A stretch of 64,000 nucleotides of DNA from Penicillus capitatus (GCA_965649825.1 OZ287702.1:248001-312000); one strand, 5' to 3'. Counted from the stretch's first letter, positions 1-63,429 are shown. Numbers and translations: made by a program. Notes: generated from the letters alone by a model not told the origin.

Positions 1-209
1 CGGAGAGCAGTTTCAGTGTTCTGCACGAACATACATCGATGGATCTGATGTCCCATCGTCGATCACCTGTAACGAGCATCGCCTTTCTTATCTGTCACCT
101 GCAAAGAAGGCGTCTGTAACCGTTTGGAAGATTACCCTTCTTGGCATACCGCTGCAAAAACGTCTGTGAAAGTGCCACCGCGATCGATGCAGAAGCTGAA
201 GTCTCGCAT
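1..209 (-). CDS. OXP1: 5-oxoprolinase, 5' end only (gene continues beyond the window start)
   Basis: Spliced translation MRDFSFCIDRGGTFTDVFAA|VTDKKGDARYR|TLKLLS matches the hydantoinase/oxoprolinase N-terminal motif FCIDRGGTFTD...LKLLS. Two short GT-AG introns. Confidence 0.9.
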
Positions 210-605
210 GGCACGCAATCGCCAAACACCACGCGGAGGTCTATGACGTCCTTTTCTCGTCAGCCGACAGTGCACTCGCGGGAGACGATCCACTTTAATG
301 GATATCATTTATGCGCCTCTTAAACCAGTGGTCGTTTCGCTTGAAGTCACTCGCGTTCGGCGTAACGTCCCGAAGTCACACATAGGGTTTGTCAGTGTCA
401 GTCAGTCAGTCATTGTTAGTACAACGATCCCTATGTACATTCAAGCAAGTATGACGCACACTCTGTCAGCCACCGAGGCATCGAATACGATATCATGGAG
501 CAGAACACATTGAAGCTTTTCGGAAGCTTGGATTGTACGACAGATTTAGGGAGAGTGCACTGCACGGCGTATCGAGATACTCTTCTGGGTGTGGAAGAGT
601 CCGTC

Positions 606-2197
606 TTACGGGCGCCGTGACATGATGGCTTCGACTAATCGAACGGCAGATGAGCAAGCGACTTGTGCATCTTCTTCTGAGGCATAGACGCCCATGGTAT
701 GCATAGCTGTACCATCCCAAACCACGGCGTTCCACTTTGAATAGTTGACCATGCGATGAATCAAGCCGAACTGATTCCGACTGGATCCAAGAATGACTTT
801 GGCTTCTTCGATGTCGCTTCCGGCAACGGTCTCAGAAATGACGGAAGATACATGGAGAGGTGGTTCATCATTCTGAGAGGATTGAAGGATTGGAACGGGC
901 AGTCTGTCAGAGAAGGCCGATGTATCCAATGTCTGCGCTACTGGACGCTTCAGCGGAAGTTGTGGACCAGCAGGCGTCAACCCCATCCGCTGCTCTGCTG
1001 AATCATCTCCCCCCTTAGGCAGTACATTCTTGAATGCACTTTCATTGGTGCCAAATATTGATGCTTGATCCACCGCCTCCTTGACACGGGTACTAAACTA
1101 CAAGCATTGCAAAACCAACCGATCATTTTACTCAGATGAGATGCGGAGAGTCGTACGGCTGGTGTGGTGATGCTCGGTGTCTTGATGGGTCGCGGCGGTT
1201 GATTGGTGGAGTTCGGGGTTGTCGAATTGGTAGCTTTTGCAATTCCGCTTGGCAAGAAGAAAAATGGCGATCTTTCGAAGGGAGATCCGAGATTTTGGAT
1301 GTGTCCATGTGTTAGATCTCTCCCCGATGGCGCGGGTGGAAACTCTTGCTTGATTTTGGTTTGGCCGGCGATCGCAGGATTCGACAGAAAAGCGCTATTT
1401 AGAAACCGCTGTTCTGCTCGATCGAATGCGCGTTTTCCAAATCCTGCTTCTTCATACCGGCCACGCTTGACGGGTACCTGTATAGCTGCGAACTGTGAAG
1501 GATGAATTTTCTTCATTGGAGTGCCAGTAAATTGCCGAAAAGGAGTTGGCTTCGGTCGAGCAGCTCCACTCATGTATTTCTCGACCAGATGTGGTGGCGC
1601 ACCACCTTTCCAATCCGCTTCGGCATAGCTGTCCACACTAGACCACACAGAACCATTCCTTCAGCAGTGTGTGTGCATTGTGTACCTGAAATTCAGTTTT
1701 GTATTCCTGCCTCTAATCTGCAAGGCTGCTAAATCAAATGCTCTTGCTGCTTCTATGTCCGAAGTAAAGCTTCCAAGATAGATGTAGCGGCCTCCGTTAT
1801 TGATTGCCGCCTGCCACCGTTTATTCTTTTTGTTCCAACATACACCACGAAAGCGAGAAGATCGAGTCTTGGTCGTCTGGGTTAATAATGGTTAAAGTGT
1901 GTAATGGTCGATATCATGTATAATGGCGATGTGACGTCGTACCTCTGGCGTAGAATTGGAGGTATTCTGCGGTTCTCGCGCCACGTTATCGTGCGGGGCG
2001 GGGTCCGCGTTCTTCGGGGCGGAAGTGCTGTTGACGGGAACACTCGCCGGAGCGGTATCTTCCACCATAGCATCATCGGAAACCGTGGTTGGCGTCTCGC
2101 AGCCGCGCGTCGCGAAATCGGACGGTGGCTGTTCTATGGGCAGTGCCGTCATGGCTTCGAGCCCGAGAGCATCGGCGCGAGAGGACGTGCAGGCCAT
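606..2197 (-). CDS. AP2/ERF-domain transcription factor (one canonical domain plus one degenerate C-terminal AP2-like domain)
   Basis: The exon at about 1700-1878 encodes SSRFRGVCWNKKNKRWQAAINNGGRYIYLGSFTSDIEAARAFDLAALQIRGRNTKLNF. The C-terminal SSRNQFGLIHRMVNYSKWNAVVWDGTAMHTMGVYASEEDAQVAC resembles a second AP2 domain. Confidence 0.85.
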
Positions 2198-2647
2198 TAG
2201 GTAATAGGAACCTAGAACAGCGCTGTCACTCACAACGGGGTTATGCGGAAATTGTGAGCCATTTTCTCACGAACGCACAAGGCCGATGGCTTTGAGAAAG
2301 AACCACGTAACGTACAAGAAGCGTTTTCACACTAACTTCGTCCTACCGCAACGAAAGTGGCAAAAAGTGATATTGAAAACGATGAACGCGAATGTCGCGT
2401 GTCGCGAACAAACATGTTAGGGTCGAACACGGAAAACGGAAAAAAACGCACGCCGGCGTTTAACGTACGTTCAGCGGAAAGGCACTTTTTTCTTGTCGGA
2501 GAAATGAGTCTCACTCGTTGCGACGGTCGGCTTCGAAGTGTCACTCAACTCACAAAGACAACGAAAAAAAGAAGAACGCAATGACATTCATGCAGACACA
2601 TCTTCTTTGTAAAGCATGACTAATCTACACCACAAAAGGAACATTGT

Positions 2648-7284: not shown

Positions 7285-8840
7285 CTATCGATGCGTTTCT
7301 GTTTCCTCTGTCAGATACATGTCTTCTTTGGCATAGAATTCTGACATGAGACGATAGACGTAGCTTGGCGTCACCCCACCTTGATCCGTCAATAGCAGAC
7401 TGATCAGATCGGGCGGCACAAAATCAAATGCCGGATTGACAACGTCCACACCTGAGCCGCCGAAAATGCGATTCTCTTGCGACGGTATGAACATCCACTC
7501 ACCACCATCGGATAGATGTGCCAACTCGCCGTACGGAATGATCTCGTGCGGCGATCTGAATTCGTTGAGCAAGAGAAAGGGATCTTGCGGAAAAATGGGC
7601 GAGAGCTTGTGCGTGCCGACCAGGACCACAAATGGAACGGAATGGTGTTGAGCGGCAGCAGCAACCATTAGAATACCGCTCTTTGCCATCACACCACCAT
7701 CTGTCAAAATCTCGTGTCCGCCCACAAACACCTGTCCTCCAAGATGTGACACGTAACGAAGCCTCACAGGGACATGCCTTGTCGGCTCGAGCCATTAGAG
7801 CAAAAATGGCGGCGTCTGTAACCAAGGTCGTCTTGATTTCGGCCTCACAGAGTTTCTTTGCCATCTGGTGGCCTACAGCACTCGATATAGAGACGGACAT
7901 AACGGTATGAGCGGCTCGTGCGATGCCTCACCGTCCAATGCTGGAGCTGCTTCGGCGACAATGACCTCCAGATCCGGTCGATTTTCGTGAGCTAGTGTTA
8001 GGAACTTCAGAACCGTTTCTGAAAAGCCGTACGTCAAAACCACCTGTCACCTCTAACTCTCTCACGCACAGGCACAGACATCTCTCACTTCGTTGGCATG
8101 GATGAGATCGAGTCCTTCTTGTGCGATCTGCGCTGGAATGTTCTCCAGTTCATCAATCAATTCATTGATGCCATCGATAACACCCTGCTTTCCTTTCCAG
8201 TTCTTGCTTTTCTTCACTGTCTTCTTTGACGCCTCTTCCTGGTGCGCCTGGACGCCAAGAGAAAGCAGCGATACTGCATGGCCACCCTCCTTCTGTTGAG
8301 GATTCAGATCCAACAACGCATGCAGAGATCGCGTCAGGCGAAATGACGAAGACGACGTGGTCACATCTTCCTGCATACGCACCGCATCTGTATGCCTGCC
8401 GGCGTCGATTGTGGGATTAGGGTTACTGTCTGGCTGGAAGAGTTGCCCTGTTCTTTGAGTTCCTCCTCCTCTTCCTCCCGAATCAAACGCAAAACGCGGC
8501 GGACAATGTTCCCGATCACGAGTTCTGTCCATATCATCTTTCATTTCCACCATCCAGATCTCTTTGTTCGCAGGACAGACCTGTTGGTTTTGCCTCTTGC
8601 AGTTTAATGCCCGTTTTCTTTACGTCTTGAAGCAGAGATGTCGCATCGGAGTAGCGGTTGTGCACGATGACGGTCCTTAAGTACTCAGCCGCCCGTTTGG
8701 AAACAGCTAGCGTCCCCGACAATTGTCTGATGGGCAGGCAGTACAGCGCCGCCGCCTTTGAAAATCTCTTGGCCAAGGGACGGAAGTTACCCGCGCTGAA
8801 GCTGACTGCAGAATTCGTTCTCGAGTTCTTCGAGCTTCAT
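7285..8840 (-). CDS. EIF2B2: Translation initiation factor eIF2B beta subunit
   Basis: Spliced: MKLEELENEFCSQLQRGQLSGTLAVSKRAAEYLR...ELVIGNIVRRVLRLIREE...LIHANEVVLTYG...VFVGGHEILTDGGV...VVNPAFDFVPPDLISLLLTDQGGVTPSYVYRL. About 7 introns, including GC-AG 7732-7777. Confidence 0.93.
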
Positions 8841-9605: not shown

Positions 9606-10285
9606 ATGGACGCTGACAAAAGCAGTGGCAATCAAGCGGACGCAACTTCGAACCGAGATGCGACGGGTGTTCGCGAGCAAGACCGTTTCTTACCTATCGC
9701 GAATATCAGTCGAATCATGAAGCGCGGTCTACCCGCAAACGCCAAAATCGCCAAAGAAGCAAAAGAGACGGTACAGGAATGCGTGTCCGAATTCATTAGC
9801 TTCATCACTTCCGAGTGTGTCTCGTCGACATGACTTGAACAACTCACTCACCCCTATTATCTTGCGGTTCTGTACAGGGCAAGTGACAAATGCCAAAGAG
9901 AAAAGCGCAAGACAATTAATGGCGATGATTTGCTTTGGGCACTGAGCACTCTTGGCTTCGAAGAGTACGTGGACCCGCTTAAGCTCTTTCTAACCAAATA
10001 TAGAGAATCGGAAACAACGTCATCTTCAGTACGCAATGCTGAAACCCGACGTCAAATAAAGCAAGAACCGAATCAGGTATGTCTTTGACTTCTCACTCTT
10101 TTTGAGTGAGATGGATGGGCGTGACTTAGATGATGATGGAAACCGGACTGGCGATGGATGATGTTCCGTACGGAAAATCTGCTTGTGATTTGGATGAAGC
10201 CATGCCGGATCTTCATCCCACGTCGACACCTCTGTTCGCAGAATATATGATGGACAACAGACCACATCATCCAACAAGAAACTAG
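9606..10285 (+). CDS. NF-YB: Nuclear factor Y subunit B (CCAAT-binding, histone fold)
   Basis: [48 protein letters not shown]|[35 protein letters not shown]. The 3' end is less certain. Confidence 0.93.
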
Positions 10286-10466: not shown

Positions 10467-12817
10467 CTACGATCCGAATACACGAGTCCCTGAAGGCGCA
10501 TGGATCTCTCCTTCAGACTTCAACTGCTGCTGCTGCTGCTGAAGCTTCTGACGAACAGACATCAAGATCTTTCCCAGATGGTTCTCTCCTTGGCCGTCAA
10601 TACCGCAACCCCAGAAGGCGTCATGTGGTGAGTCTTCGATGATGATGCTGTCTGCTGTCGACAGAAGCATGTTTCTGGCACCCTCGTGGGACTGGAACTT
10701 TGCCAGATTGGCCTCGAACATCACCTCCACTCGCTTTTCTGTCCAGTCTTGTCTCAACAGAGAGGGCTGTTCGCGTGTTATACGTCTTCCGATCTTGGCA
10801 GCTTCTTCAGGACTGGTGCTCTCTTTTATCTGCTGCCGAATTCTTCTTGCCAGGGGATCGTCGACACCTTCGTCACGCACGAGCATGAGATGTCCCGTTT
10901 GAGATTCAAAGAGGAACACCTGCAAATTTCTGTGCCTGGTAGTAATGTTCTACTGAGGGCCACAGTTCACTGTCTTCGTCCAGAGAAGAAGGGAGTTTTC
11001 CATGAGGCCCCACACCGGAGTACGTGACAATGGGATAGACAGAAAAATTAGAAAACACGCCCCATTCGTCCCAGGACTTAAAGAATTTGATGATCGCGTT
11101 TTGAGAATTCGTGGATGTTGGCATCTGCGTCCGAAGGAAAGAAGGCTTATGTGTAGTCACACTTTCATGTTGGGTCGATATCTGGTCCACTGCATCGGCC
11201 AACGAGAGCAACCCTCCTGAAGAAGGAAGATATCCTGTCAGCATCACATCTGGACCGACCTGCACGCACATCCATTCTGCTTGTACAGCAATATATGTCC
11301 TGAAGATAATGGCGGCGTTCGACCTTTTGAATGTCCATATGTGAAATTTGAACCGCCTGCGTCATCTCCACGAATCCAAGTTCCCCACAGGGATTGGGTG
11401 CTCTGCAGCCTCCAATGATCTTGGGAGACACAAAAGCCATAACCTTGTGAATGGCCCCCGAAGCAATTGCAGGTGCTGCCAGTGTTCCTCCGCATTCCCA
11501 CAGCACTTGCATAAATCCGCGTTCATAACAGTAATCCGCCACGTGACTGGGTGATAGAAAATCAAATTCAACGACGTCGATTCCTTTGTCTCTCAGTTCC
11601 GCTTGAAACGAAGGTCGGGCTCCGCGCTGTGTCATGACAATGGTTGGCGCTTTATCTAGGTTCCAGAGATTGGCATCGGATGGGAGGTCCATGGTTCTGG
11701 ACATCACAATTCGCGTCGGAGAGAAGCCCTCTTCGCGACGCGTTGTGAGATTTGGATTGTCGGTGCGGACGGTGTTGCCACCCACGATGACAGCATCCGA
11801 GATCGCTCGTGTGGCAAAGACTCTCTGTCGGGCAATGGGAGAACTGACCCATCCGGCATGTCCTGTCGATGCTGCAATCTTTCCGTCCAATGTCATCGCG
11901 TACTTTAGCAAAGATAACGGTTTATGCGTCACCACACGATGCAGCAATGCCTCATTTGTCTGCAGGCACTCCATCTCTACTTCTTGGATCTCTGCTTCTG
12001 AAGCGTGGCATGGAGCAATACCCAGAACAGCCACATCAATGCCTCGTTCTTTCAACGCCTGGTAAAGGCGTTTCGTCAGGAGGAAAGACAAGATGAAGGG
12101 ATGACCTTGACGGCGCCATGTCTGAGGTGTGGCATAGGATGAAGCATTCCGATGACAACGCGTTGTACCCCTGCTTCAGCCAGAGCCTTGACAGAAAGCA
12201 CACCTCCTTCGACATCTCCAGGCTCTAAGTTCAGATAGGCCGTGCATCCAAGTGCATCGATTGAGGCAGCAGCCTGACATTCAGCCGAGACCGTCCCCTG
12301 ATTCCAGTCAAGCAGTTTACCTCCATGCTGAAATGGCAGAAGGAGAGACACCTGTGCGCGTTGGTGTGTTTCGACAAGAATATTGCCATCCGAATGCACG
12401 ACCACGCAGCCAGAATACGGATGTGGTTGAAAAAGACCTATCCATGAAATCAATAATAGCCACGTGCTACGATTCAAAGACATTAGGACCTTCAGATTTC
12501 TTAGCGACCAGACTCGCTTGCTTGAGAAACTTCAGATCCCTTCCTGCAAGGGCCAAAACGACTACTTTATGACAGCGCAGAGGTTCTTTGGTGAACCTGA
12601 GATAGAAGAGGAATGGGAGTTTGTGTTTATCGCCGCCACCTATAAATGCAAAGAGGGTTCTTCAGTGTCCGTTGCGTCTGGTCAAATCTTGTTGCCGCAC
12701 AGACACGCATCGTCTTGGCCACGTTGAACGCAGAATGCCGCTTGACGCATTCCGATTCAGAAAGGCTGCTTTTTCACGTGGCAGTATCGAAAAGCGTCGA
12801 TTGTGGTGCAGCAACAT
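10467..12817 (-). CDS. PYRR: Plastid riboflavin biosynthesis PyrR: degenerate deaminase, reductase (RibD) and C-terminal NADAR/COG3236 domain
   Basis: LKYAMTLDGKIAASTGHAGWVSS, DAVIVGGNTVRTDNPNLT and VLWECGGTLA (reductase); FSNFS...WPSVEHYYQAQKF and DAFWGCGIDGQGENHLGKILM (NADAR). The 5' exons are less certain. Confidence 0.9.
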
Positions 12818-14007: not shown

Positions 14008-14999
14008 ATGGTCGAACACGACGGAGTTTCGCACAGATCTCACTCTTTTCCGAGAAAAGACATTTCTTTAGGCGAAGAAGGGTAACAATGTCATGCGCGA
14101 TATCCGAGTGCATAAACTCGTTCTCAATATCTGCGTTGGCGAATCGGGTGACCGACTTCAGAAGGCAGCAAAGGTCGAAGAAAGTGTGACCATCCAAGAT
14201 CACGCTTATATGTCACATCAGGTCTTGGAGCAACTCACGGGGCAGACGCCAAAGTATGGAAGTGCCAGATACACAGTTCGTACCTTCGCCATTCGAAGAA
14301 ACGAAAAGATCTCGACTTATGTCACCGTTCAAGGAGCCAAAGCACTACAGATCCTGGTTCGGCCAATCTCACTCTTTCTATCGTGTAAGAGATCTGTCTT
14401 GTCTAGGAAGCTGGACTGAAAGTGAAAGAGTACGAGCTTCTGCGAGGCAACTTCTCCAATACCGGCTGCTTTGGTCTCCCCTTTCACCATCACTCTTTAT
14501 CTACGACTATGCTATTCTTTAGGTTTCGGCATCACGGAGCACATCGATCTGGGAATTAAGTACGATCCGTCGACGGGCATTTTTGGCGAGAATCTCACTC
14601 TTTTTTTCATACCTTACGAAACGGTCGGGTTCTTAGGAATGGATTTCTTCTGTGTCTTGGAGAGACCTGGATACCGAATCACTAGACGACGACGCTGCAA
14701 GAGCAAACTTGGTTATCCACACCGAGTCCACAAAGAAGATGCCATCAAGTGGTAAGCCTCTTCTCTAAATGACGTGCGCCGCCAATTGGTATCTGGATGG
14801 ACGACGGACTTCTCTCATCTGTTCTCATAAGAATTGGCAATAGTAATCGTGCATAGCGACGTGCGATTGTCTTCTGATGACTCCTGCATTACTGTTTTTG
14901 CACGCACAGTTTCATTTCTGCCTCCCTAACCGTTGCTGCGTGTTTGGATTCAGGTTTCAGACGAAGTTCGAAGGAATTGTTCTGGCAAAGAGTCGTTGA
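14008..14999 (+). CDS. RPL11: 60S ribosomal protein L11 (uL5)
   Basis: M|[34 protein letters not shown]|[10 protein letters not shown]...[17 protein letters not shown]|[11 protein letters not shown]...DAIKW|[10 protein letters not shown]. Six introns, including GC-AG 14586-14636 and a 202-nt last intron. Confidence 0.97.
14779..14911 (+). ncRNA. Intronic box H/ACA snoRNA in the last intron of RPL11
   Basis: Hairpin 1 is closed by GCCAATT(14781)/AATTGGC(14838). It is followed by H box ATAGTA (14840-14845), hairpin 2 closed by CGTGCA(14848)/TGCACG(14904), and ACA at 14906-14908 plus 3 nt. The host intron is about 4x longer than typical introns in the window. Confidence 0.8.
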
Positions 15000-16037: not shown

Positions 16038-17799
16038 TTACAATTGGATAAATCGTTCAGGAATGTCCCATTCGTCACGAAGCAAAGAAGCCATACGCTT
16101 GCCATGCTGACCCTGAAGAACGAGCTCTTGTTCTTTGACGCCTTTGTGAAAGATATCTTGTAGAGAGGTCGAACAGGCGAAGCGCTTTTGCACCGTGGAT
16201 GCCAGAAATTCTACATCGACCAAGAACGCTTCCAGTCCCGAAATACGTGTTTCAAATTTGTTCCCTGCACGCTTGGCGTGGCGAATCTGAATGTCCGGCA
16301 ACGTCCCTTTCTTCAAAATCTGCACCAACGAACATCAGATGATCATTTATGTCACTCGAAAAAGAGTGACCTCGAGGGGACCCCGGGAAATACGGAACTG
16401 ACGATGCATTCGCTTCATGGCCGCTTCTCTGAGCTGAGCTTTTGGCCAATACTCTGCCATCTTCTCATCCTTCTTAAGCAGTCCTTTGAAAAGGGCCTCT
16501 CCGAGAACACGATCGATGACAACATGCTGTTTGTCTGGGATCCCTTGATCGAGTTGAGCATGTTGGACATAGCGGAGAGCGACTTCGGATGCCTCTTTCT
16601 TTGACAGAACACAACCTGGCTTGAGTCCAATCTGGACCAGAAGCTGACGGAGCTCGCGGCCCATTCTGTACACCTCTTCGATGCGAAGTCCACTCGATGT
16701 ATCCTCCGTTTTTGGTTGAGACACACGATGTGTTGCATAGGTGCGGAACTCAGTGTACAGATGATGTTGTCTGTGGATGCCTGTGATGACGGTCTCGTTT
16801 GAGTACTTATCAACAATGACAGTAATCAGAGGATTGTTTCCGTCTGCCAAAACCTGCAAGAATTTCGAGAGCTTCTTGTACGAACTCAGCTTCGCATCGA
16901 TGTGGACACCGGGTTGCCTACTCAAATATCTGTGATCGGCAAAAGCCCAAAAGTGCACACGGGGCTGACTTGTATGGTAGCATATGTTTAATCCAGAGCT
17001 CTCCTGCGGCCAGAGGAAGATCGTCGTCCTTCACGCTTTTGTGCAGCGCTTGGAGAAAACACCGCTGCAGGAGATCATCCATTTCTGCCTGTTGTTGCTC
17101 AGGACTCAGTTCCGCTGGCGTCTCCTCTGACGATTCTTCCTTGGCTGGGTCCTCTGAGGGTATTTCCTCGTCGTCTTTGTTTTCACTGTCTTCTATTGGT
17201 TGCTCTGGACAGATGATGGCGGCAGTAAATCCTGGATTTGGTGGATGCATTTCTTCGTAGTGCACTGTCATCAGGTCTCCATAGTAATGGATAATGTCGA
17301 CGAGCTTTCCCTTTCCTGAAGTGCCTTCCGAGGCCTCGATGGAGCTCATGGCGGCGCGGCCAATGGCAAAGGGATAGGGGTTGCCAGGGACAAAGAGTGA
17401 CACCAGGGTTCCACGCAGAAATCCTTCTTGGAACGGCATTTTGGCACCAGGCAGCATCAAATCCGCGCCTCCCAGTATAAACTTTGACACCGAAAAATGC
17501 TTCAAGACGATCATTGGCAGCAACTGAGGCATTTGCCACAAGACTGGAAGACAGGGAATGACGCCATCGTTCTTTGACAGCTCGAGGGCGAAAGGCAGGC
17601 CATCGAACAAGTAAAGATGTCCTCTATGGGGTGCCTTAATCCTCGCGACGGTGCACTCGCCTGACTTCAGCGGGAAAACGAGTTCCAATCGATCCTCCGT
17701 GAAGCGAGGATACAAGCGCTGTAGAGTTGCCTTCAGCTTTTTGCGGTCCTTCCCCGAAACTTTGTTCTCGGCGTCTATCGTGAAGTGTTTCTGAAACAT
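16038..17799 (-). CDS. EIF2D: Translation factor eIF2D/ligatin (PUA, SWIB and SUI1 domains)
   Basis: KVSGKDRKKLK, VSKFILGGADLMLPG (PUA), IDAKLSSYKKLSKFLQ, and C-terminal KRAGNKFETRISGLEAFLVD...ELVLQG (SUI1). Two introns. Confidence 0.92.
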
Positions 17800-20721: not shown

Positions 20722-23079
20722 ATGGACTGGTACACGGTTGATGAAGTATCTGAAGACGAGGCGCTCGAAGTTATCCACATCTCGCGCGTTTCTGTCTGAT
20801 GTCTCTCCTTACAGAATGCTCCCTCGTCGGCGCGGGAGCAGATTGTCTTCCTGATAGACGCGCATCCAAAGATGTTTGATAAGCTTGAAGAGGATCAGGT
20901 CTGTCGACATGTGTTGTTTTCAGAGGACAAGATCGCTATGCAGGGCATTCAAGCAACCTCATTGTTTGATCTCACTCTTCGCGTCTGCCTGGATGTACTC
21001 AGAAGCCGAGTCATCGATTCGCCCTACGATGAAATGAGTGTGATCTTCTATGGCACAGTGATGGCAGATCCATGGAACCATCTCTGACGCACTGCCGCAG
21101 AAAACGAAGAACAATGAACAAGGATTTGAGTATGTCCACATCTTTCAGGAGTTGGACGTGACAGAGGTCCAAAGAATTAAGACCATTGGATCTTTCACAG
21201 GCGAACACGCAAACATCTGAATCAAGCATTCAGCTGTGGTGTATGCGATAGAGGCGAGTTTTCATGAGACGATTGGCATTCATGCCGATCCTGCGGCCGT
21301 GTCAGCAGAGAGCCTGAAACTTGGTCTGTGGACAGCCAAGGATCTCCTGGACAACAGGTGCTCGCCCACAGTGCAAGACATCACTTGAGATGCATTGCGA
21401 TATCCAGATGGAAAACAGCGAAGACCATTTTGCTCTTTACCCCCAACAACGATCCATGTGCCAGTTCTTCCGAAGACAGGTCAATCGCTCACAAACGATC
21501 GATCTCGTTATGGGACATGTCTTGATGGCGTGCAGAGATCAGATCATGACGCGCGTCAAGTCATTTTCGGAAGCCGGGATCCAGTTACGGATCTTTGTGC
21601 TTCCTACGGACAAGACAGTCCCTTCCACGACTTTTTGGAAGGAAGTGAACGACAGTGCTAAGATTGATGAAGATGAGGACGATTTTGGTGATGATGTCCT
21701 GCAGCGACTGGAAAATCTCTTTGATGTTGTTCGGAAGAAATCCCAACAGAAACGATCGCTCGCTTCCCTGCCGCTCACCATCATCAAAGATATCACCTGT
21801 GCTGTCAAAGTCCTCGATGAGATCCTTTGCCTCTATCTAATCGTCTGTTATAGCTTTACGCTTTGGTCCGGCCGGCTACAAAAGGAAAGGTGATGAAGCT
21901 GGATAGCTCCCATGCCAATGAAGAACTTGTGGCATCGACGGCATACATTTGCAATGACACGGGTCAGGGAATCTCTCTCGTTGTCTGTGTGTAACTAAGT
22001 GCAGGAGCAGGTGCCAAGTTGGACAGAGTGGAGCATTTCTGTTATCGACCCGAGAGAACGGATCCAAGTCGCTATCCTGCATTCGTGATGACCCATGACG
22101 AGTTAGAAAGCGCAAGAAGACAGAGTTCAAAGCCCGGCATCAGAGTTCTTGGATTTCAGTCAACAGGAGCTTTGAAAGACTATCATCAGCTGTGTCCATC
22201 TGTCTTTGTGTATCCAGACGAGAGCAGTCAGAGAGGCAGCAAAGCCACGTGCATCGCACTCCATGAGAGTCTGCTGAGAAATGGAACCATGGCGATCTGT
22301 CAGTACCGCAAGACGGAAAACAGCGAGAGCCGTATGGCCGCTCTTCTGGCCCAGCAAGAGACACGCGATCGAGATGGGCGACAGGTTGCATCGCTGCTCA
22401 GTGAAAAGACGTCGGAATGAAAGGCATTTCTAGGTCTATCCTCCTGGATTTCACCTGATCGTGCTTCCCTTTCTCGACGATATCCGCTATCCCGAACTCG
22501 ACCCCAAAATTGTGGGCGACGATTTCTACTATGCAAACGAAGATCAAATCAGCAAAGCATCGGCGTTGGTAGAGGCGACGACACTTGAAGAGGATTTCTC
22601 AACCACAGACATCTCCAACCCGCATCTCCAACGCCACTTTCAGATCATCGAGGTCACGATCCGAAAGACCTTTTCAGAATCCCTTCAGAATCAACGATGC
22701 TCTTCAGGCTCTTGCACTAGGAGAAGACATCCCAGACATTGCAGATTTCGTGGATGAAACGCTTCCCAGCGAAGAGGCGATGCGAGAGCATGAAGATGCA
22801 GTCGTGGCGTTCAAGACATCTGTCTATGGAGCACAAGGCGAGGAGGCGGCGTTTCCATCTGGAAAGAAACGCAAAATGGAAAGAGAGGAAGATCCAAGAG
22901 TGTTTGTGGCGAAGACGAACTGGAAAGAGCTTGCTCAGAATGATAATCTGGGCAGTCTCACCGTCGACAAGCTGAAGATGTACCTGGAATTCCACAATTT
23001 GCCACTGTCGGGACGCAAAGCCGATATTATCGTTCGAATCAAGGCACACATCGCCATCGGGTTGTCGCCTGACGGTTAA
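20722..23079 (+). CDS. KU70: Ku70 (NHEJ DNA end-binding protein)
   Basis: vWA REQIVFLIDA; core LKDYHQLCPSVFVYPDE and GFHLIVLPFLDDIR, NPHLQRHF; C-terminal SAP domain LGSLTVDKLKMYLEFHNLPLSGRKADII. About 10 introns, including GC-AG 21201-21251. Confidence 0.92.
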
Positions 23080-34413: not shown

Positions 34414-34529
34414 GTACAGAAAAGATCTTTCAAATGACGCTTTACATAACGTTCTGGTCAAGCAGCGCCATTTCACGTGTAAACACAATCGGCCATTCCG
34501 AGAAAGCGCCTCTTCTCGTAGTTGTCGCC

Positions 34530-41078: not shown

Positions 41079-43201
41079 ATGACGGAACGGCAGTGTCTGA
41101 GAAATGAACTGAGGGAGAGTCTGTACCGCCCATTATGGGGAGCGAAGAAGCAGTCGCCGGCTTCGCTTGACGGTGTGGTGCGCTGCTTTCCGAGTGAGAC
41201 ACCTGTGGGACCTTTGACTCGACCCACTGGACTCTCCCGAGCACAACAGCTCGTGGTCTTCGATACTCTCAAGATCATCTGCCTCCCAAGCTTCTGTCAC
41301 AGTCACGGAGGCGTGGTTCGACATTAAGTGCATGAAAGTTGCTGAAAGAGAGGGATCGTTTGGACTTAGACGGTGGATCGGGCGTTTCCACTGATCGGGA
41401 CAGCGAGATGGTGGTCAGCATTGCTTGCGCGGATAAAAGTGCAGAAATGCCTGCAGCAGGCGGGATCGACATTTATGGACAAAGTGCGGTCGTGATGGGA
41501 CAGTCACCTCTGTGATGCCGAAGTGCGTTAGGTCAAGAGTATCGGCATTGGCGAGAACTACTCCCTGAGTCTACGGACCAAAGCACGCATTGGAAGGTGA
41601 TTTCGACGCAGCATTGTTTGGCAAATGCTGCAATGATAATGGCAGTCGCACATCGATTGAAGGAGTGATGGAAACGGATGATGCATCGAACGTGCGGCAT
41701 CTGTTCGCCAAACATCCTGAGACGATGCGTGGAGAGATGCCGGATCGATGGGAAGGCATCGGTGGCAAAGTGGAGGTGGTCCACAAATTCGATCCCTTCA
41801 AACTCTTCATCAGCTGGGCGTTCAGAGAGAGATTCCACACACCCAACTCCTCTCTCTTGCTTCCTTCTCTTCTCTCAACGGAGATTGTGTCCAACGATCT
41901 GCACAAACCCTTTCATTACCGCCTGGGCCTGCATCAAGTCATCCCTGATCTGCTGTCGATCTGTTTGCACAGCGATGGTTGGTGCAGGTTCTGGATGTCT
42001 TTCCAAATGCATCAGATGTTGAGCATGACAGCAACAATGCCATCTACTTTCAAGGGGGCTTTGGGTTGGATGGTGTTGCCACATTGCTGCAGTCGCCAAG
42101 GGCGAAGAGAGAAACAAAACAGGATCGGCTTGGACAGATGCGAGAGGGAAAGCTGAGCGGTGTGAGCTTCGATCGCTCATTCTCAGACACACGTACCAAA
42201 GAACGTCGTCCTGGTGTCCATCCATCTTCCTCGACGTCTGACACTTCCGACAGTACCATCCATTCCCATCTGCATCCTCCGTCTGCTGAAATGCTGTGCT
42301 GTATGAGGCAGTCCAGCCTTTCCGTCTGCTGAGCAGATTTTGAAAGACCTCCAAGGACACACCTCTGCTCTTCAGAAATCGTCTGAGGTTCTTTCCAAAG
42401 CAACCGAGGATGTAAAGGACGGGAAACTGAAGAGATGGAAGTCTCGTTTGGAGAAAGGACTGTTTGGAATCAACAAAAGAGCACGGTATCATGCCTTTCT
42501 CCCTCCAGCCCATCTCAAAGTTGGAGGACTGGCTGGCGTGGTGGCATCCTTTGGATTTCATAAAGATGGTCTGGAACGACCCCTCTTCGTTGAGAGTGGT
42601 CCAACGACGCCCTCCTTTCGTCACTGGAATACCATGAGATGGCGATCTGCCGTAGATGATCATCCCATCAAGTCTTTCTTGGGATGCAGCATCAGTGCTC
42701 AACTGGGACGCATGCGTCGTCGAATCTTGAGCTTCACTTCTGCCTTGGTTCAGTTTGAATGCACGGTGCCCATCATTACGGGACAGGCTTCGCTTCCACG
42801 ACGACTACAGAGCATTGCTGCTTCCAGTCGACGCAATCTCATGATTGGCACCGTTCCTGTGCGTCCTCTGGTCAACTTCTCCTACACTCAACAGGCAACA
42901 CAGCACAAACCAACAAACATGAATGGTTGCCACACAGTTCGCGTTCTCGTAGGTTTTTGGTCCTGTTCGAGCAAAAGTCGACTATCGAGTCGGTCTCGAA
43001 TCGTCAATCGGCATCGGCAGTATGCCGAATCTTCATCCAATGAATGCTTTTTACAGGCAACTTCAGAGTGTGCGTCCGTGCATCGTTGATGCTCAGTATG
43101 GTTTCGACTTTGTCGTTCCCGGGACACAAGGGGCTGTCAAATTCTGCGGATGGTATGCACCTTACAAGAAAGAAGCGATGGCAGAACTTCGTCTTTTCTA
43201 A
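41079..43201 (+). CDS. TGD4: TGD4-like plastid outer-envelope lipid transfer protein
   Basis: N-terminal SPASLDGVVRCFPSETPVGPLTRPTGLSRAQQL; C-terminal PLVNFSYTQQ|VFGPVRAKVD...GWYAPYKKEAMAELRLF*, paralleling plant TGD4 (TPVTLEGTAR...; QQVAGP...AWYSPKRKEGMIELRVF). GC-AG intron 42895-42952. Confidence 0.82.
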
Positions 43202-44369: not shown

Positions 44370-45390
44370 ATGTCGATGATTTCTCTGTAAACGCCTTTCG
44401 TCTGAACGCAAATCGACGCGAAACCGCGTGGAAGAATCGCGACAGCGACGGCGCATGATCATGTGCTTTACTGGGAGTCGGGATCTGTCTACTGCTGGCG
44501 AGCGACGATCGTCTTAGAAGAAAAGGAGCTTCCACATGAAAGCAAACTCCTCGACTTTTCTAAAAGTCACACTTCTCACGCCATCTCGGTCACAAACAAC
44601 ACGTTGTAAATTCTAGTGGAGCACAAATCGCCGGAAGTCATGGCATTGAATCCGAGAGGACAACTTCCAACGTTTAAAGACGGAGATGTCGTGCTAAACG
44701 AATCGGGTGCCATCGCCATGTACGAGAAAATCAGTATCCTGAAAAACCGCTTCTCCCGTCGGATCCAATCGAAAAAGCAAAAGTCTCTGTTGCACATATA
44801 CCCCCTATCCTTCAATAGACATTCGGGCTTAGGTGTTACAACAACGCTTCGAAGCCATCGTAGATACAAAGCATCGGAACTACGCCTATTATCTGGTAGG
44901 ATGTCGATCTGTTAATCTGCGAAAAGCATCTGAATCTTGTAATAGATGAAGGATCCAGAGAGTCAACAAGCTCAACAGCAGATTGAAGTAATTAGAGTAT
45001 CATCCACCGATTGCAGCATCCCATCAGGACTGTGTAGTTTCCAGGGAGAAACGGCTCTGTGGGATACATATCTGGGTACGCAGAAATGCTTAGCAACAGA
45101 CGCATTCAATTTAGCTGCTACTGTTCTTTGGCAATTGGTTCTGTCCCAAACGCAACGTGACGCTAGATGCGATGTTGGCGCTGATGCTCTTGATTCTGGC
45201 AAGGTTTGGAATGACGTCTAAAGACTATCCTAACATCAAAAAGTACTGCGAGATGATACGGGCAAGTACGGATCTCTCTTGTTCGTCCTTTAGCTGTGTA
45301 TACATTCAGGAGCATCCATCTGTGACGAAGACCTCTCCTCCACACTTGGTTAGCGCCGAGCCTACAAACTCTTTCATAAATTTTCTGTAG
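44370..45390 (+). pseudogene. Glutathione S-transferase (rho-like) gene with two apparent lesions; pseudogene or assembly error
   Basis: LYWESGSVYCWR, ALNPRGQLPTFKDGDVVLNESGAIAMY, then a 1-nt frameshift near 44724 before NQYPEKPLLPSDP. Intron 45118-45166 starts with CT. The start codon is uncertain. Confidence 0.65.
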
Positions 45391-45729
45391 TCTTAGATCT
45401 TTTTTATTTAGTTTTAAATGACAGTCAGCAATAGATACATTTTGGTGGCAGTAGTATGCGATCGAGCTTCTTAATGGTCTCTGATCCCTGCAGTTTAAAC
45501 TGAGTTGATCGAACACAACTCTAGCAATCTGGACTGGGATGCATAAGGGACTTCCTATTTCGCGTTTTCGACGTGTTCTTTATCGCAGAATACATCGTCT
45601 GCTGCATCCATGACAGGTTATTTAGAGTCGGGCATCCTACGAACGACGTCGTTAAAGAACCCATCAGATTATAATCCACTTCAGCTAAGAGGCCGGCGAT
45701 TACATCGTGTAAAAAAGAGTATCCTGTAC

Positions 45730-45827
45730 ACAGCTTAGCATGTGTCTGTACAATTGCCAGAAATAAGATGGTCTAAACAGCTTAACATGTGTCTGTACAG
45801 TTGCCAGAAATGAGATGGCCTAAACAG
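45730..45827. repeat. 47-bp tandem duplication (2 copies)
   Basis: CAGCTTAGCATGTGTCTGTACAATTGCCAGAAATAAGATGGTCTAAA followed by CAGCTTAACATGTGTCTGTACAGTTGCCAGAAATGAGATGGCCTAAA (4 mismatches). Confidence 0.9.
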
Positions 45828-46048
45828 AAAATCCCTCTTTTTATTAAACAAAACTGACAGAATGTGATTGATTCAGCACTACATCATCAAGGTTGTAAAA
45901 ACTAGTTGACACAAGTCCAGCTTTTTGAATGCCCAAAAGATAAAAACTGGCACAGAGATATGCAGAAACGCCATATGATTATTCGTGTGGAGGTTATTAA
46001 TAATGTCCCACAACAACTAGAATGTATGCGGTCAGCTCGATAATATAT

Positions 46049-47720
46049 TGTCTGCTGCTAGATGTCAAATCAAAGGCTGCTGGATGTCATCTTCATTAAA
46101 AGCTGTCCTCTGCTTGAGGCTTCGGAATATGCTGTCTGCTGCTGGATGTCGAATCAAAAGCTGCTGGAGGCAGGCTTGCTTCATCATGTGTTGTCGGATG
46201 TCAGTCAAATCATTGGTTGTCTGCTGCTTGAGGCTTCGGAATATGCTGTCTGCTGCTGGATGTCGAATCAAAAGCTGCTGGAGGCAGGCTTGCTTCATCA
46301 TGTGTTGTCGGATGTCAGTCAAATCATTGGTTGTCGAATGTTGGATCAATTACTGTTTGCCGACTGGAGGCTTCATCATATAGGTTGTCTGCTGCTGATG
46401 CCGGATCACAGACTGCCGGAGGCTTCGTCACAGGCTTTCGTCTTTATCATAGGCTCTGTCGGATGTCCAATCAAAAACTGTTCGCTGCCGGAGTCTTTAT
46501 CACAGGTTGCCGTCTTCTTCGTAGGTCATCGATAACACATCAAATCTTGTCTGCTGCTGAAGGCTTTATTGTAGCCTATCAGCTTAGTCTGTCGAATGTC
46601 AGATGTCGAATCAAATCGATCGGATGCTGCTGGAGGCTCGATCGTAGTCAATCGTCTTTATCTTCGGCTGGAGGATGTCAAATCTAAGGCTCGATCATAG
46701 CTAGTCGTCTTCATCTTCTGCTGTCAGATGTCGAATGTGGTCGATGGGATGCTGCTAGAGGCTTGATTGCAGTCAATCGTCTTCGGCTGGCGGATGGCAG
46801 ATGGCACATCTAAGGTTTTCTGCTGTTTTTGGAAGCTCGATCGGATGTGCTGGAGGCTTCATCTCAGTCTGTCGGATGTCAGATGTCGAATCTGAGGCTT
46901 AATCATGGACTGCTGGAGGCTCGATCGTAGCTGTCATCTTCATCTTCATCTTCATCTTCATCTTCGGCTGTCGGATCTGAGACTTGATCGTGGACTGCTG
47001 GAAGCTCGATCACAGGTAATGGTCTTCATTTTCGACTGTCAGATGTCAAATCAGGCTGGATCAAATGTTGCTGGAGGCTCGATCACAGTCAACTATCTTC
47101 GTCATCGGATGGCAAATGGCAAATCTAAGGCTGTCTTCTGCTGCTGGAGGCCGATTGGATGCTGTCGGCGGCTCGATCGTAGCTGTCATCTTCATCTTCA
47201 TCTTCATCTTCGGCTGTCGGATGTCATACCAGGCTCGATCAGATGTTGCCGGAGACTCGATCGTACCAGTCGGATGTCGACTCGGATCGATCGGATGCGC
47301 TGGAGGAGTTATCGTAGTCTGTCGGCGTAGTCTAAAGGATGTCAGATGTCGAATCAGATCGATCGGCCGTTTCTGGAGGCCCGATCATCGTTAAACGTCT
47401 TCGCTTCGGCTGGCAGATGTCTAATATAAGGCTCGATCGGGTGCGGCCAGAGGCTTCATCGTACTCAATCATATTCTGCTGTCAGATATCACATGTCGAA
47501 TCAGGTCGATCGGAAGCTGCTGTGGAGGCCCGATCGTAGCTAGTCGTCTCCATCGTAGCTGGCAGATCGTGAATCGAAGGCTCGATCGGATGCTGCTGGA
47601 GTCTCCATCGTAGTCAATCGTCTTTGTCTTCTGCTGTCGGGTGCCAAATCGGATCGATCGGATGCTGCTGGAGTCTCCATCGTAGTCAATTGTCTTCATC
47701 TTCGCCTGTCGATGTCACAG
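46049..47720. repeat. Degenerate satellite/minisatellite array (about 70-115 bp units)
   Basis: Recurring motifs TGCTGCTGGAGGCTCGATCG, CTGTCGGATGTCAGATGTCGAATC and TAGTCAATCGTCTTCATCTTC. Near-exact 114-bp duplication (46110/46224), 72-bp period (47583/47655), and (CATCTT)n tracts near 46935 and 47187. Confidence 0.9.
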
Positions 47721-47751
47721 ACCTGGATGTCCAATGAGGTCTGAAAGAGAC

Positions 47752-48627
47752 GATGGGTCCATCTCAACCCCGTCCCTGGAGCCCGGACCCATAAGGTGGA
47801 TCTAAAACACAAAGATCATTAGTAGATGCGAGAAATGGAGAAGATAGGTGCTTACTGCATCAAGAGAGCGATCCCCCAGGCTCTGGAAACAATCCCACGT
47901 GCCACTTGACGCGGTCGCAACGGCTTTCCACCTTGGGGGCGTCTCTCGGTGAAATAGAAAAAACGGACCGCGCAGAACGTGGAAAACGCATCAGAGAACG
48001 AAGTCGGACATGCAGAAAGGGAAAAAGAAAAAGAACACAGAAAAACAAGGAAGGAAAAAAGAACAGAAAAAAACGCAGAGGCAAAACACGCGGGTAAGAA
48101 AAAAACAAAAAAAATAAGAAAAGGGACAGGTCCATGTCCCAGACATATCAGAATACAAAGAAAAAAACGCGCAGACAGGTCATGAAGGCACCACCGCAAC
48201 GAAAAAATGCGGTGGTGGCAAAAAACACAGAAAGGGGAAAGGAAAAAACAAAAAAAAAAAAAAAATAGCGCGCCCGCGAGTGTGACCGCAGAAAAAAATG
48301 ACCCTGCCCGCGGCCAGAATAGAAAAAAAAAACTAAAAAACGATCATCAGAAAAGACGATCGAGCGGACGCGGACCGAAATTCAAAAAGGCCGCAGGCAG
48401 GGCTCACCTCGCTACGCTTGCCCGCGGAGTACCGACCTACAGCTCCCGGTACCTGGACAACGCAGGCGCCCCTCGGCACTGGTTTCACGCCCCCCTAATG
48501 CCATTATAGTGTCCCGGGCGCCAGCTCCCCACTGGGGGAAGCTGGTCCTGCAGGCAGATGGTCATTAGATGGGCGGAAGAATTCGTCGAACTACTTACTT
48601 GACGGGACAGGGTTGAGTGGACCCATC
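47752..48627. mobile_element. 876-bp non-coding element flanked by imperfect ~25-bp inverted repeats (non-autonomous TE-like)
   Basis: GATGGGTCCATCTCAACCCCGTCCC (47752-47776) versus the reverse complement of 48604-48627, GATGGGTCCACTCAACCCTGTCCC. The interior has a ~420-bp A-rich purine tract and a GC-rich block. No transposase and no clear TSD. Confidence 0.55.
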
Positions 48628-60901: not shown

Positions 60902-60964
60902 CTCAGAGGTCTTTTAATCATCTCTTCCTTCCCCATAACGACACATACGTACACGCCTTATCCA

Positions 60965-61572
60965 TTATTTGGCGGCGGGATCTGAGCTGGCGGCAGGATC
61001 TGAGCTGGCAGCGGGATCTGCACTGCCTTCCTCCTGTGTCACACCTGGAGGTCCCTCCCAGAATCCCGTCTCCCACGGATCGTGATCGATAAAAGTTTTC
61101 TCCTGAAGAAAACCGTTCTCGTGATCGTATGCCGTGTTCGTGCGTTTACCTCATGGTCAGCCGGAACGTCCCAAGGTTTGTGCTCTACAAACAATACAGC
61201 AAGATCATCCAATCCCATCGAATGGTGTGGGGAGACAGACTGACGTGCTAGCAAGGGGATGAGTTTGATTTCGTCCTCTGTCATGGAGATGACTTGTTCC
61301 AACTGAAATCCAAAGATCTCTTCCGCCTTTTCGTCGTTGTCGTTTTCTTCCAGAACTTTCAACTTCTCGTCGACGTTCTGAACGACTGTTTTTCGATAGA
61401 ACGCGGTCTCGGGGACCAGTTGCGACATGAGTTCTTTAACCTTGTGCAGGTTCTTTATCAAGTTCTCACGAGCGTTGGGATCGACGGGCAGTCCAACGAT
61501 GCCCGTTGACGTCTTGACCGACCGAATGAGCGGAGCATCGCGGAACAACCGACGCGAAAGGGCCCGTAACAT
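60965..61572 (-). CDS. NDUFA5: Mitochondrial complex I subunit NDUFA5 (B13)
   Basis: KTSTGIVGLPVDPNARENL...YRKTV...QLEQVISMTEDEIKLIPLLA|QHKPWDVP. Two introns. The C-terminal tail has an 18-bp repeat (DPAASS). Confidence 0.9.
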
Positions 61573-61661
61573 ATCGAAGGCGTAATCCGTTCGACCGAGA
61601 CGAGATGACAATCAAAATCGTCAAAGCCTGAAACACGTGTGGCTGCTGGCTGGGCCCTCTT

Positions 61662-63429
61662 TTAAACAAAAGTACCGTTCGAATGCAGCTCTGGATAAGA
61701 CCATGGCTCAAACCCCATACCATACACCGATTCTAGCACAGGCCATGAGTGTGAGCGAGAGAGAGGGGATCAGGAAGGACGGACCGGGATCTTCGACGGT
61801 GTTGCCGACTGGTTTCTTGCTGTAGGTGTCATTCCATTCGTAACATGGGACATCATCCATTCCATACTCATCGGGGTAAACCGTTCCTTGAGGATTGAGC
61901 GTGAACCACTTGGGTTGCCAAGAATCCGATCGCGATTGCCGTTCGCGTTTCTCCATTCGTTGCATCTCTTCGAGACGTTGCTTCCAAGTCGCCGCCGCTG
62001 ACGAATCGCCTCGATCCAGGGCAGCAAGATCGGGTCGACGGCGAGAATCTGTTGCCAAAGGTTCAGGGATACCTACAGGCACGACGCTTCGGGATCTAGA
62101 CCTGTGCCCGATCGCTCACCAGTAGATGTATTGCATTTGTAGCAGAAGTACGTTCGACCATAGGCGTCATCTGCCGGCTTCTCTGCACAGGACCAGATAC
62201 GTTCGGGGGAGGCATCTTTTGATTCTTTCTCTGTTGTAATGTACTGTACGTCACAGTGATCGTTCCACATACCACTCATACGACCCGTCTCTTTGCCTCC
62301 GACAGTGATGCTGCCGTCAAATTCGTAACGACCGTCACTGAACCAACCACAGGGAACGAATTCCAGATCGGCTCTGTCGCCTACAAAAGAGATAATGTTA
62401 TCAACTGCTAGACTTCGATGTGTGTCGCCTGTTGTGATGTTGATGACAGACATCTTGCCAAAGGTATCGATCCAGGTGCGGCCGATGATTAAGTTACACA
62501 CACGGCTGGTGGGTGGAATGATGGAGAAGACCTCGCCACTTTTCTTAAGCCTGATATGCGAGCGACCTACAACCAAAAAGATAAAGAAATGCGTTTCGGC
62601 CAAGTTGCCAAAAACCATAAGGATAGATATCGGCAGAGTTGCCTAGGAATTTTGTCTTGGGCGCAGAAACAATGTCGTATGTAAAATGTGCATTCTCCGC
62701 ATGTGCCGCTCCTATTGGTGGATGATGTGACACCTTGAAAAAAAACACAGAAATGTACCAGGTCAAATGGATGAGAATCGACAGGGTGTTGCACCTGTTC
62801 GGCTAGGAAATGGACATTGTTGCCGCACTCTAGCTCGAACGTTTCGCCAAGGATCGGATTAAAGGGCTTCCACGCTCTTTCAATCGCTCCATACGGCGTC
62901 ACGGCAAAGGCCGTCACACATGCAAGTCTACAGAGAGCTTATGTGACACGGGATGTGATGCTTCACGATGCCTTTCGGTGGCCGTTGTCGCGAGATCTGC
63001 TCGATCGAGGAGATCCGTGTACTCCATGATCTCTGACATTTTCTGCAGGACTGTGAAAGGTTCCATGATCCAAACGGGCACCGACATCAGCGACATGACA
63101 TCGTGACCAATATACTGTGCCAAACTGGACCACATCTGTTGCCGTCTCTGAAGGGATTTGATTGTCAGGGGAGAAAGGAAAGAGAGCACAGACGTCATCG
63201 GGGTCGACGAGAGTTCCTGCCTTGTGCGCTTCTTCGCTGTTTGGGTCAACGACCTCTAAATCCTCTGGACTCAGGAATCTGTGCGTAGGCAGCAGGTACA
63301 CGCTCGTATGCAGCTAAGGGGATAAGCACACGTGTTGAGTTGTTGCTGAGCGTAATTTATCCAACTGGCTCCCCATTTGTAGACAGAATCGAGGACACCT
63401 TCCTCTTCGGCATCTGGCCCTTGACTCAT
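61662..63429 (-). CDS. Oxysterol-binding-protein-related protein (ORP3 type)
   Basis: [52 protein letters not shown]|VSHHPP, DSRRRPD, FEPWSY. Eight introns, two of them GC-AG (62928-62971, 62381-62428). Confidence 0.93.

Follow-up and report, generated by a model that had tools for sequence, protein, structure and literature searches.

Short introns with little 5' splice-site consensus in a gene-dense 64-kb region of Penicillus capitatus

The DNA analysed here is a stretch of 64,000 nucleotides (64 kb) from Penicillus capitatus (GCA_965649825.1 OZ287702.1:248001-312000), referred to as the window, and the subject is the introns that interrupt its genes. Its GC content is even over the whole length (47-53%), and eukaryotic genes are densely packed on both strands. 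They include genes for Hsp110, RPL11, GAR1, Gemin2, eIF2D, eIF2B-beta, Ku70, Serinc, NDUFA5, poly(A) polymerase (PAP), a PP2A-type phosphatase, an LHCI protein, a MORN protein, PF16/SPAG6, a GST, an oxysterol-binding protein (OSBP), a flagellar NDK with a Dpy-30 domain and a riboflavin-synthesis gene (RibD_C plus NADAR). The genes for PF16 and for the NDK with Dpy-30 show that flagella are made at some life stage. No tRNA was found in the window, and no Rfam family at gathering or E-value thresholds. Nearly all introns of these genes are about 50 nucleotides (nt) long, begin with GT or GC, end in AG, and carry almost no sequence information at donor positions +3 to +6.

The window is part of a 6.93-Mb contig in a metagenome assembly (ENA ERZ25074695). 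The nearest named protein matches are from Caulerpa lentillifera (61% for Hsp110, 68% for the riboflavin-synthesis gene); for Hsp110, Bryopsis and Ostreobium rank next, at about 50%. Judged from these two proteins, the nearest named relative would be Caulerpa (Bryopsidales). A close relative (ENA ERZ26696514, loci L001 and L002) shows 95% amino acid and 85-88% nucleotide identity to the window, and a distant relative (Logan SRR33785046 assembly, locus L003, 44% GC) shows 66-69% amino acid identity. Caulerpa is an outgroup to all three, at about 58-61%.

Introns were identified by comparison. A total of 40 kb of the window was aligned to the close relative and modelled with a custom two-strand comparative gene finder with calibrated intron penalties, whose score takes into account codon-position-specific substitution, indels, stop codons of both species and whether the terminal dinucleotides are conserved. 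The gene finder was deliberately built without a donor or acceptor weight matrix. A protein-to-genome spliced aligner was also written; both programs were restricted to GT/GC...AG ends. The remaining ca. 24 kb lack an alignment to the relative and were not reliably modelled (1-1242, 21.9-28.5, 45.6-50.3 and 52.8-64 kb), except for the OSBP and NDUFA5 genes. The gene finder returned 22 solid genes with 96 introns; with homology added, 99 introns were obtained in the ca. 40 kb modelled. The initial annotation had placed about 110-120 introns in the whole window, which is plausible given this number.

For 40 introns, the borders could be fixed with the help of homologous proteins or of an orthologous intron in the distant relative; these introns are referred to as the verified set. 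Three homologous proteins were used for Hsp110, and a transcript-derived homolog (P0122) together with the Caulerpa homolog (P0127) for the riboflavin-synthesis gene. Homologs from the PDB were human PP2A-C (2ie4_C), Chlamydomonas PF16 (7n6g_0A) and S. pombe eIF2B-beta (5b04_C), and the curated RPL11 protein matches uL5 (7qiw_M) without gaps. The distant relative was the homology source for the OSBP gene and six more genes, through targeted alignments of curated proteins. Four introns of the light-harvesting gene were left out of the verified set, its best PDB alignment being a multi-domain fusion that did not resolve the junctions. Three other approaches were abandoned: de novo gene finding from base composition (the coding bias is too weak, with 53% GC at third codon positions, and two Hsp110 introns were misplaced), a single-strand version of the comparative gene finder (it linked genes of both strands into giant models) and alignment of all open reading frames of the distant relative to the window (noisy, with antisense frames and spurious terminal introns).

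When compared to the 40 verified introns, about one-fifth of the donors called by the gene finder were wrong, always by 6-9 nt in frame, and it overlooked in-frame introns without stop codons. Examples are 30791 for 30800 and 62101 for 62119, both of which gave false GTC donors. In three cases the coordinates of the initial annotation were right: the program was wrong at 7732-7777 and 34266-34317, and it missed the second RPL11 intron. A selection of individual introns is listed in Table 1.

Table 1. Introns of the window with their donors and the support for their borders (a slash marks the exon-intron border).
Gene and intron	Position	Strand	Length (nt)	Donor	Support and remarks
RPL11 (uL5), intron 1	14026-14071	+	46	GTTTCG	gap-free protein match to 7qiw_M
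RPL11, intron 2	14174-14221	+	48	GTCGAA	in frame, stop-free; removal restores universal segment; L003 has GC-AG intron at same position
RPL11, intron 3	14357-14406	+	50	GTTCGG	uL5 match; orthologous L003 intron
RPL11, intron 4	14474-14522	+	49	GTCTCC	uL5 match; orthologous L003 intron
RPL11, intron 5 (GC-AG)	14586-14636	+	51	ttg/GCGAGA	no GT alternative preserving IFG/MDFF; close relative GTGAGA, L003 GTAAAG
RPL11, intron 6 (sole long intron)	14752-14953	+	202	GTAAGC	uL5 match; L003 has 187-nt intron at same place
Riboflavin-synthesis gene	10868-10919	-	52	GTGTTC	AAG acceptor; spliced alignment of transcript-derived P0122 and Caulerpa P0127
Riboflavin-synthesis gene	11260-11323	-	64	GTCGAA	P0122/P0127 alignment; orthologous L003 intron
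Riboflavin-synthesis gene	12059-12105	-	47	GTCATC	P0122/P0127 alignment; close relative donor GC; orthologous L003 intron
PP2A-type phosphatase	30536-30583	+	48	GTCACA	2ie4_C spliced alignment; 16/17 flanking residues identical
PP2A-type phosphatase	30677-30730	+	54	GTCCAC	2ie4_C spliced alignment
PP2A-type phosphatase	30800-30852	+	53	GTGGAT	alignment needs TVDQ/IRLIDR; gene finder donor 9 nt early
Hsp110	40063-40115	-	53	GTCACT	spliced alignment of three homologs; orthologous L003 intron
Hsp110	40305-40356	-	52	GTATGC	homolog spliced alignment; L003
OSBP	62073-62119	-	47	GTGAGC	L003 alignment
OSBP (GC-AG)	62381-62428	-	48	cag/GCGACA	in frame, stop-free; L003 has 42-nt GT intron, same codon and phase
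OSBP	62567-62615	-	49	GTTTTT	L003 alignment
OSBP	62734-62794	-	61	GTGCAA	AAG acceptor; splits EQ/VSHHPP signature; L003 alignment
OSBP (GC-AG)	62928-62971	-	44	aag/GCATCG	yields TER/LACVTAFAV collinear with L003, which has GTCCAT
eIF2B-beta (GC-AG)	7732-7777	-	46	aag/GCATGT	ends in ACAG; 5b04_C alignment needs ADK before donor; close relative also GC
Ku70-like gene (GC-AG)	21201-21251	+	51	cag/GCGAAC	comparative gene finder; close relative GT at same site
PF16/SPAG6 (GC-AG)	32974-33022	-	49	cag/GCATAT	spliced alignment to 7n6g_0A; close relative also GC
PF16/SPAG6 (GC-AG)	34266-34317	-	52	cag/GCAAGC	homolog favours the initially annotated donor over that of the gene finder (6 nt off)
Conserved gene 41079-43201 (GC-AG)	42895-42952	+	58	cag/GCAACA	orthologous introns have GT: close relative GTCATC, L003 GTTCCA
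GST-like gene, near 3' end (candidate GC-AG)	45262-45309	+	48	cgg/GCAAGT	close relative keeps GCAAGT; alternative GT-AG reading remains

The introns are short and of very uniform length. In the verified set, 39 of 40 have 44-64 nt (median 50), the exception being RPL11 intron 6; in the full set, 98 of 99 have 41-66 nt, with 2-9 introns per gene. This agrees with the initially proposed range of 42-65 nt for nearly all introns. Identity to the close relative is about 0.94 in exons and about 0.73 in introns, and the step between the two is exactly at the called borders, with 0.92-0.97 in the last six exon bases. At the other end, acceptor positions -1 and -2 do not vary, and identity at -3 has already fallen to background. 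When orthologous introns of these two species are compared, 69% differ in length, and 47 of the 61 indels are not multiples of 3. Despite these indels, all 88 short orthologous introns remain within 41-66 nt. The median length is 50 nt in the window, 51 nt in the close relative and 42 nt in the distant relative (range 38-46 nt), where the introns occupy the same codons and phases. All three intron phases are used. Segments encoded by the introns are absent from P0122 (546 amino acids, from a 2.2-kb contig of a relative) and from the published Caulerpa models, which are based on RNA-seq.

The donors are GT in 33 and GC in seven of the verified introns, and GT in 89 and GC in 10 of all 99. The verified set is enriched in GC because the GC claims of the initial annotation were targeted, so that the full set gives the more typical share of 10%. 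AG is found at the 3' end of 99/99 introns, an end that the methods required. Where homology fixes the junction, the aligned proteins appear to leave no choice but GT/GC...AG ends. Beyond the dinucleotide, very little is conserved. GTRAGT is matched by none of the 40 verified donors and by two of the 99 in the full set. Among the verified GT donors, +3 is C in 12, G in 10, A in seven and T in four, which gives a pyrimidine in 16/33 (48%); in the full set it is 36/89 (40%), close to the initially estimated 40 of about 105. The donor hexamers that had been quoted in support (gtcgaa, gttcgg, gtctcc, gttttt) are all present (Table 1). Information at +3, +4, +5 and +6 is 0.05, 0.07, 0.07 and 0.05 bit in the verified set, and 0.05-0.09 bit per position over both sets. 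Donor identity to the close relative is 1.00 at +1, 0.90 at +2 and 0.84 at +3, and from +4 onward it is at the intron background (0.71-0.76). A residual bias is seen as low T at +3, low G at +4 and mildly elevated G at +5 (38-43%), while +6 is unbiased; C is enriched around +7. The U12-type donor /RTATCCTT (with branch site TCCTTAAC) was searched for, and the motif is in no donor listed.

GC-AG introns make up about 10% of the 99-intron set. Their donors have a purine at +3 in 10 of 10 cases, compared to 60% of GT donors (Fisher p = 0.012), and the exon ends in AG before seven of the 10. Together with the avoidance of T at +3 and the preference for G at +5, this purine is a faint echo of the ordinary donor consensus. 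The claim that the 5' splice consensus is nearly absent holds in that GTRAGT is missing from the verified donors and each position from +3 to +6 contributes about 0.05 bit, but GC donors are not signal-free. GT and GC are interchanged between species: the window and the close relative differ at 7 of 89 orthologous donors, and the distant relative has GC donors in 3 of 23 orthologous introns. Between the window and the distant relative, swaps affect RPL11 intron 2 (GT/GC), RPL11 intron 5 (GC/GT) and three OSBP introns. Over all three species, RPL11 intron 5 is GC / GT / GT, and in OSBP both GC / GT and GT / GC occur.

Nine GC-AG introns had been proposed initially. Six of these were reproduced exactly by spliced alignment (those of eIF2B-beta, RPL11, PF16/SPAG6 and OSBP in Table 1), and that of the conserved gene 41079-43201 is confirmed through its orthologous introns. 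The Ku70-like case is supported by species comparison, while the one in the GST-like gene is plausible; neither of the two C-termini that are possible for the latter had a Pfam hit.

More information resides on the exon side of the borders. In the verified set, exon position -2 is A in 72%, -1 is G in 72%, and the next exon starts with G in 75%; the information is 0.74 bit at exon -2, 0.81 at -1, 0.71 at acceptor -3 and 0.92 at the first base of the next exon. The acceptor has a pyrimidine at -3 in 38/40 verified introns (95%) and in 86/99 of the full set. AAG acceptors, also proposed initially, were verified twice, in the riboflavin-synthesis gene and in OSBP (Table 1). Upstream of the acceptor (-5 to -12) there is only a mild T enrichment. 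The exons examined (21.8 kb) contain 33 copies of AGGT, compared to 63 +/- 7 after codon shuffling, a two-fold depletion (z = -4.2), while AGGC is not depleted in the same exons. A GT...YAG of permitted length occurs 459 times in these exons, but AG/GT...YAG/G only four times, so that exon context and length together are a strong discriminator.

Other potential cues are faint. Intron GC has a mean of 0.49, with 0.47 in the interior and 0.50 in the flanking exons. No shared branch-point motif was detected by k-mer enrichment in 92-99 introns, which is a small sample for a degenerate CTRAY-like motif of the kind expected 15-40 nt upstream of the acceptor; TCACTCT(T) is the sole recurring k-mer, found in 7-8 introns. 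There are no families of repeated introns (the top 7-mer occurs in 7 of 92 otherwise unrelated introns) and no terminal inverted repeats. Of the five short introns of RPL11, four (1, 3, 4 and 5) contain a pyrimidine-rich (A)TCTCACTCTTT 10-20 nt past the donor, as do three other introns (10077-10129, 16320-16370 and 31987-32041). Seven of the 13 window copies of TCACTCTT (both strands) lie inside the 99 modelled introns, which represent about 4% of the sequence. (A)TCTCACTCTTT is conserved in the close relative and was not found in introns of the distant relative. Its role could be that of an intronic enhancer, of a pyrimidine tract or of a branch site that serves very weak donors.

We consider it probable that these are ordinary U2-type spliceosomal introns of a compact green-algal nuclear genome, which operate with a minimal 5' splice-site code and intron definition. 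In such a code, G at +1 would be invariant, and +2 would be T or, in about one-tenth of the introns, C; a C would require a purine at +3 and would usually follow exonic AG. Further cues would be the (C)AG/ ... YAG/G context on the exon side and a narrow, species-specific intron length (ca. 50 nt here, ca. 42 nt in the distant relative). Recognition would occur across the intron (intron definition), and +3 to +6, the positions at which U1 and later U6 small nuclear RNA (snRNA) normally pair, would be almost free to drift. We infer that length and exon context guide the spliceosome and that U1 pairing is confined to about -2 to +2. As +2 and +3 are coupled, some pairing energy seems to be needed still, and the modal length, which differs between species, points to a length window of steric or kinetic origin. 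The initial annotation had already suggested definition by intron length and exonic (A)G/G context. This is borne out by 0.05-0.07 bit at +3 to +6 compared to 0.74-0.92 in the exon, by the tight length and by the AGGT depletion, but these cues do not account for every intron by themselves.

Several points weigh against this reading. Both AG/ and /G are present in only 13 of the 40 verified introns, so that further cues must exist, and some donors are nearly signal-free (e.g., gga/GTTTCG in the ribosomal-protein gene). The composition biases at +3, +4 and +5 are weak but significant (p = 0.0015, 0.009 and 0.0003), and ordinary U1/U6 pairing may thus still contribute. The figures for the 99-intron set are softer than those for the verified one, given the rate of donors misplaced by the unaided gene finder. 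Use of the junctions is judged from homology and species comparison, and the evidence covers a single syntenic region, studied in three species. A relaxed or remodelled U1/U6/U5 recognition system had also been suggested initially; Rfam scans of the window and the related loci L001-L003 revealed no gene for U1, U6 or any other snRNA, and no other family.

One alternative is a region-specific class of introns, with the rest of the genome having fewer and longer introns of normal consensus, as described for the introns of the 'big outlier chromosome' (BOC1) of Mamiellales. Those have 40-65 bp, are numerous per gene and lack splice-site and branch-point motifs, and the introns of the window fall into the same size range. 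The sole long intron has a more ordinary donor (GTAAGC, with GTACGT in its counterpart in the distant relative), and all loci studied are mutually syntenic and so represent this one region. Nevertheless, we think that this is unlikely: the introns are not AT-rich, while it is a drop in GC that defines BOC1, and GC remains flat at 0.47-0.53 over 64 kb in an organism that is not a mamiellophyte. Also, the window is located 1.6 Mb into its 6.93-Mb contig, and the copy in the close relative is in a 4.08-Mb contig.

It is highly improbable that the weak consensus is an artefact of misplaced borders, with true GTRAGT donors a few bases away. Such errors were indeed made by the gene finder, which lacks a donor model, misplaced about 20% of the donors and created false GTC donors in this way. 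However, the verified introns are even less consensus-like (a higher share of pyrimidines at +3 and no GTRAGT at all). The junctions of RPL11, PP2A, PF16 and OSBP lie in stretches of 90-100% conserved residues, where no in-frame shift is possible, and conservation falls sharply exactly at the called borders. Removal by something other than the major spliceosome, such as non-conventional excision as in euglenids or elimination at the DNA level, might account for the missing branch-point motif and for the near absence of a donor consensus. This is scarcely conceivable, because G at +1 and AG at the 3' end occur in every intron (though required by gene finder and aligner), and because features that the methods did not impose also fit spliceosomal introns: the pyrimidine at -3 (87-95%), the AG/G context, the three phases and the mild T-richness. 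Moreover, intron positions are stable across species with 30-40% protein difference, and the introns share neither terminal inverted repeats nor a common sequence family.

Canonical U2-type introns of plants and animals have a GTRAGT donor, and GC-AG introns represent about 1% and have a strengthened consensus. The introns of the window share with them the G at +1, the AG at the 3' end, the YAG acceptor, the AG/G context and the compensation of GC donors (+3 purine, exon AG). They differ in that each position from +3 to +6 provides about 0.05 bit rather than several tenths to more than 1 bit, that 40-48% of GT donors have a pyrimidine at +3, and that GC-AG is about ten times more common and is swapped with GT between close species. 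Degenerate donors combined with short introns do have precedents. In Cryptococcus neoformans, Kupfer et al. 2004 reportedly found short introns with weak GTNNGY donors. The compact genome, several introns of ca. 50-65 nt per gene, variability at +3 and +4 and presumed intron definition are common to both, but Cryptococcus has kept G at +5 and a pyrimidine at +6, while in the window +5 is G in only 38-43% and +6 is unbiased. The minimal introns of ciliates and of chlorarachniophyte nucleomorphs have 15-30 nt, are AT-rich and have GTA...TAG-like ends. They resemble those of the window in their very narrow, species-specific length and in having few signals past the terminal dinucleotides, but the introns of the window are ca. 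50 nt long and of balanced composition.

The nearest described class is the BOC1 introns of Mamiellales. In Mamiellophyceae (Ostreococcus, Micromonas, Bathycoccus), these are defined as short (below 75 nt), have 40-65 bp, are numerous in each gene and lack a splice-site or branch-point motif (Moreau et al. 2012, PMC3491373; Verhelst et al. 2013, PMC3879977); they can be recognised only by being AT-rich (below 43% GC) within GC-rich exons, and they occur in a low-GC region of one chromosome (PMC3491373, PMC3879977). According to Moreau et al. 2012 (PMC3491373), other green algae lack this feature. Both are short GT-AG introns of green-algal nuclear genes, many per gene, with no detectable consensus and with positions conserved between species. 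Unlike BOC1, the introns of the window have about the same GC as the exons (0.47 vs. 0.50), occur in a Caulerpa-like lineage and have about 10% GC donors. Some BOC1 acceptors are TG or CG; none were seen in the window, where the methods allowed only AG. An origin from Mamiellales, raised by the resemblance to BOC1, is ruled out by protein similarity, with no Mamiellales among the top hits. With the introner elements IE-A1 of Micromonas, 53% of which have GC donors (PMC3879977), the introns of the window share a high proportion of GC-AG in a green alga. IE-A1, however, consists of repeated families with a strong AG/GYGCGT donor, while the introns of the window are unique sequences without an extended donor motif. 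Introns or splice sites are not discussed in the Caulerpa genome paper and its supplements, and no description of such introns in Bryopsidales was found in the literature searched, so that the pattern is apparently undescribed for this order.

Some further observations concern the region as such. In the close relative, the same genes occur on two contigs (L001 and L002; 451 kb and 4.08 Mb) with proteins that are 99.8% identical (P0001 vs. P0242); these are probably haplotigs or derive from two strains. L002 is collinear with the window across the syntenic region at 1.2-21.9 kb. In the distant relative, PAP, Hsp110, the riboflavin-synthesis gene, NF-YB, OSBP, NDUFA5, RPL11, Gemin2 and eIF2D are found within 21 kb in rearranged order, and in Caulerpa the genes for riboflavin synthesis and Hsp110 are three gene numbers apart (g1263, g1266). 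As window genes are clustered in both, micro-synteny outlasts 30-40% protein divergence. The section 45700-48100 is repeat-rich, with tandem units of 47, 114, 53 and 149 nt and low-complexity A-rich sequence. It has no alignment to the close relative, which resumes at ca. 67% identity from 50.3 kb, and it appears to be a fast-evolving intergenic or repeat island within an otherwise collinear region. At 32519-37039 (minus strand), the gene finder merged PF16/SPAG6 with an upstream gene that has MORN repeats, several predicted membrane spans and ca. 14 short introns. The PP2A-type phosphatase has at 31070-31125 (plus strand) about 15 residues more than human PP2A-C, in two gaps directly before a conserved segment. 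This insertion in the catalytic subunit is coding rather than an intron, because it has no usable GT...AG and is well conserved in the relative, with four substitutions in the 54 nt. Retention of RPL11 intron 2 or of the in-frame GC-AG intron of OSBP, both stop-free and of a length divisible by three, would add 16 residues and would not trigger nonsense-mediated decay.

For genome annotation, this means that the latter two introns are invisible when annotation is based on open reading frames, and that the ca. 10% GC-AG introns and in-frame introns without stop codons will be missed. A broader possibility, which we regard as doubtful, is that the whole siphonous (Caulerpa-like) lineage splices all of its nuclear introns with G at +1, a pyrimidine at +2 and exon context, that GT and GC are near-neutral alternatives, and that U1 snRNA, U6 snRNA or their proteins have changed to match. 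In that case, one could study in a natural setting how little base pairing is needed for 5' splice-site recognition, and introns of the BOC1 type would have arisen a second time, independently and without the cue of AT-richness. If the pattern is genome-wide, thousands of introns would be spliced accurately with essentially no intronic donor information beyond GT/GC. This would constrain models of U1 and U6 recognition, and it would provide a contrast to the BOC1 introns of Mamiellales, for which AT-richness had been regarded as the cue.

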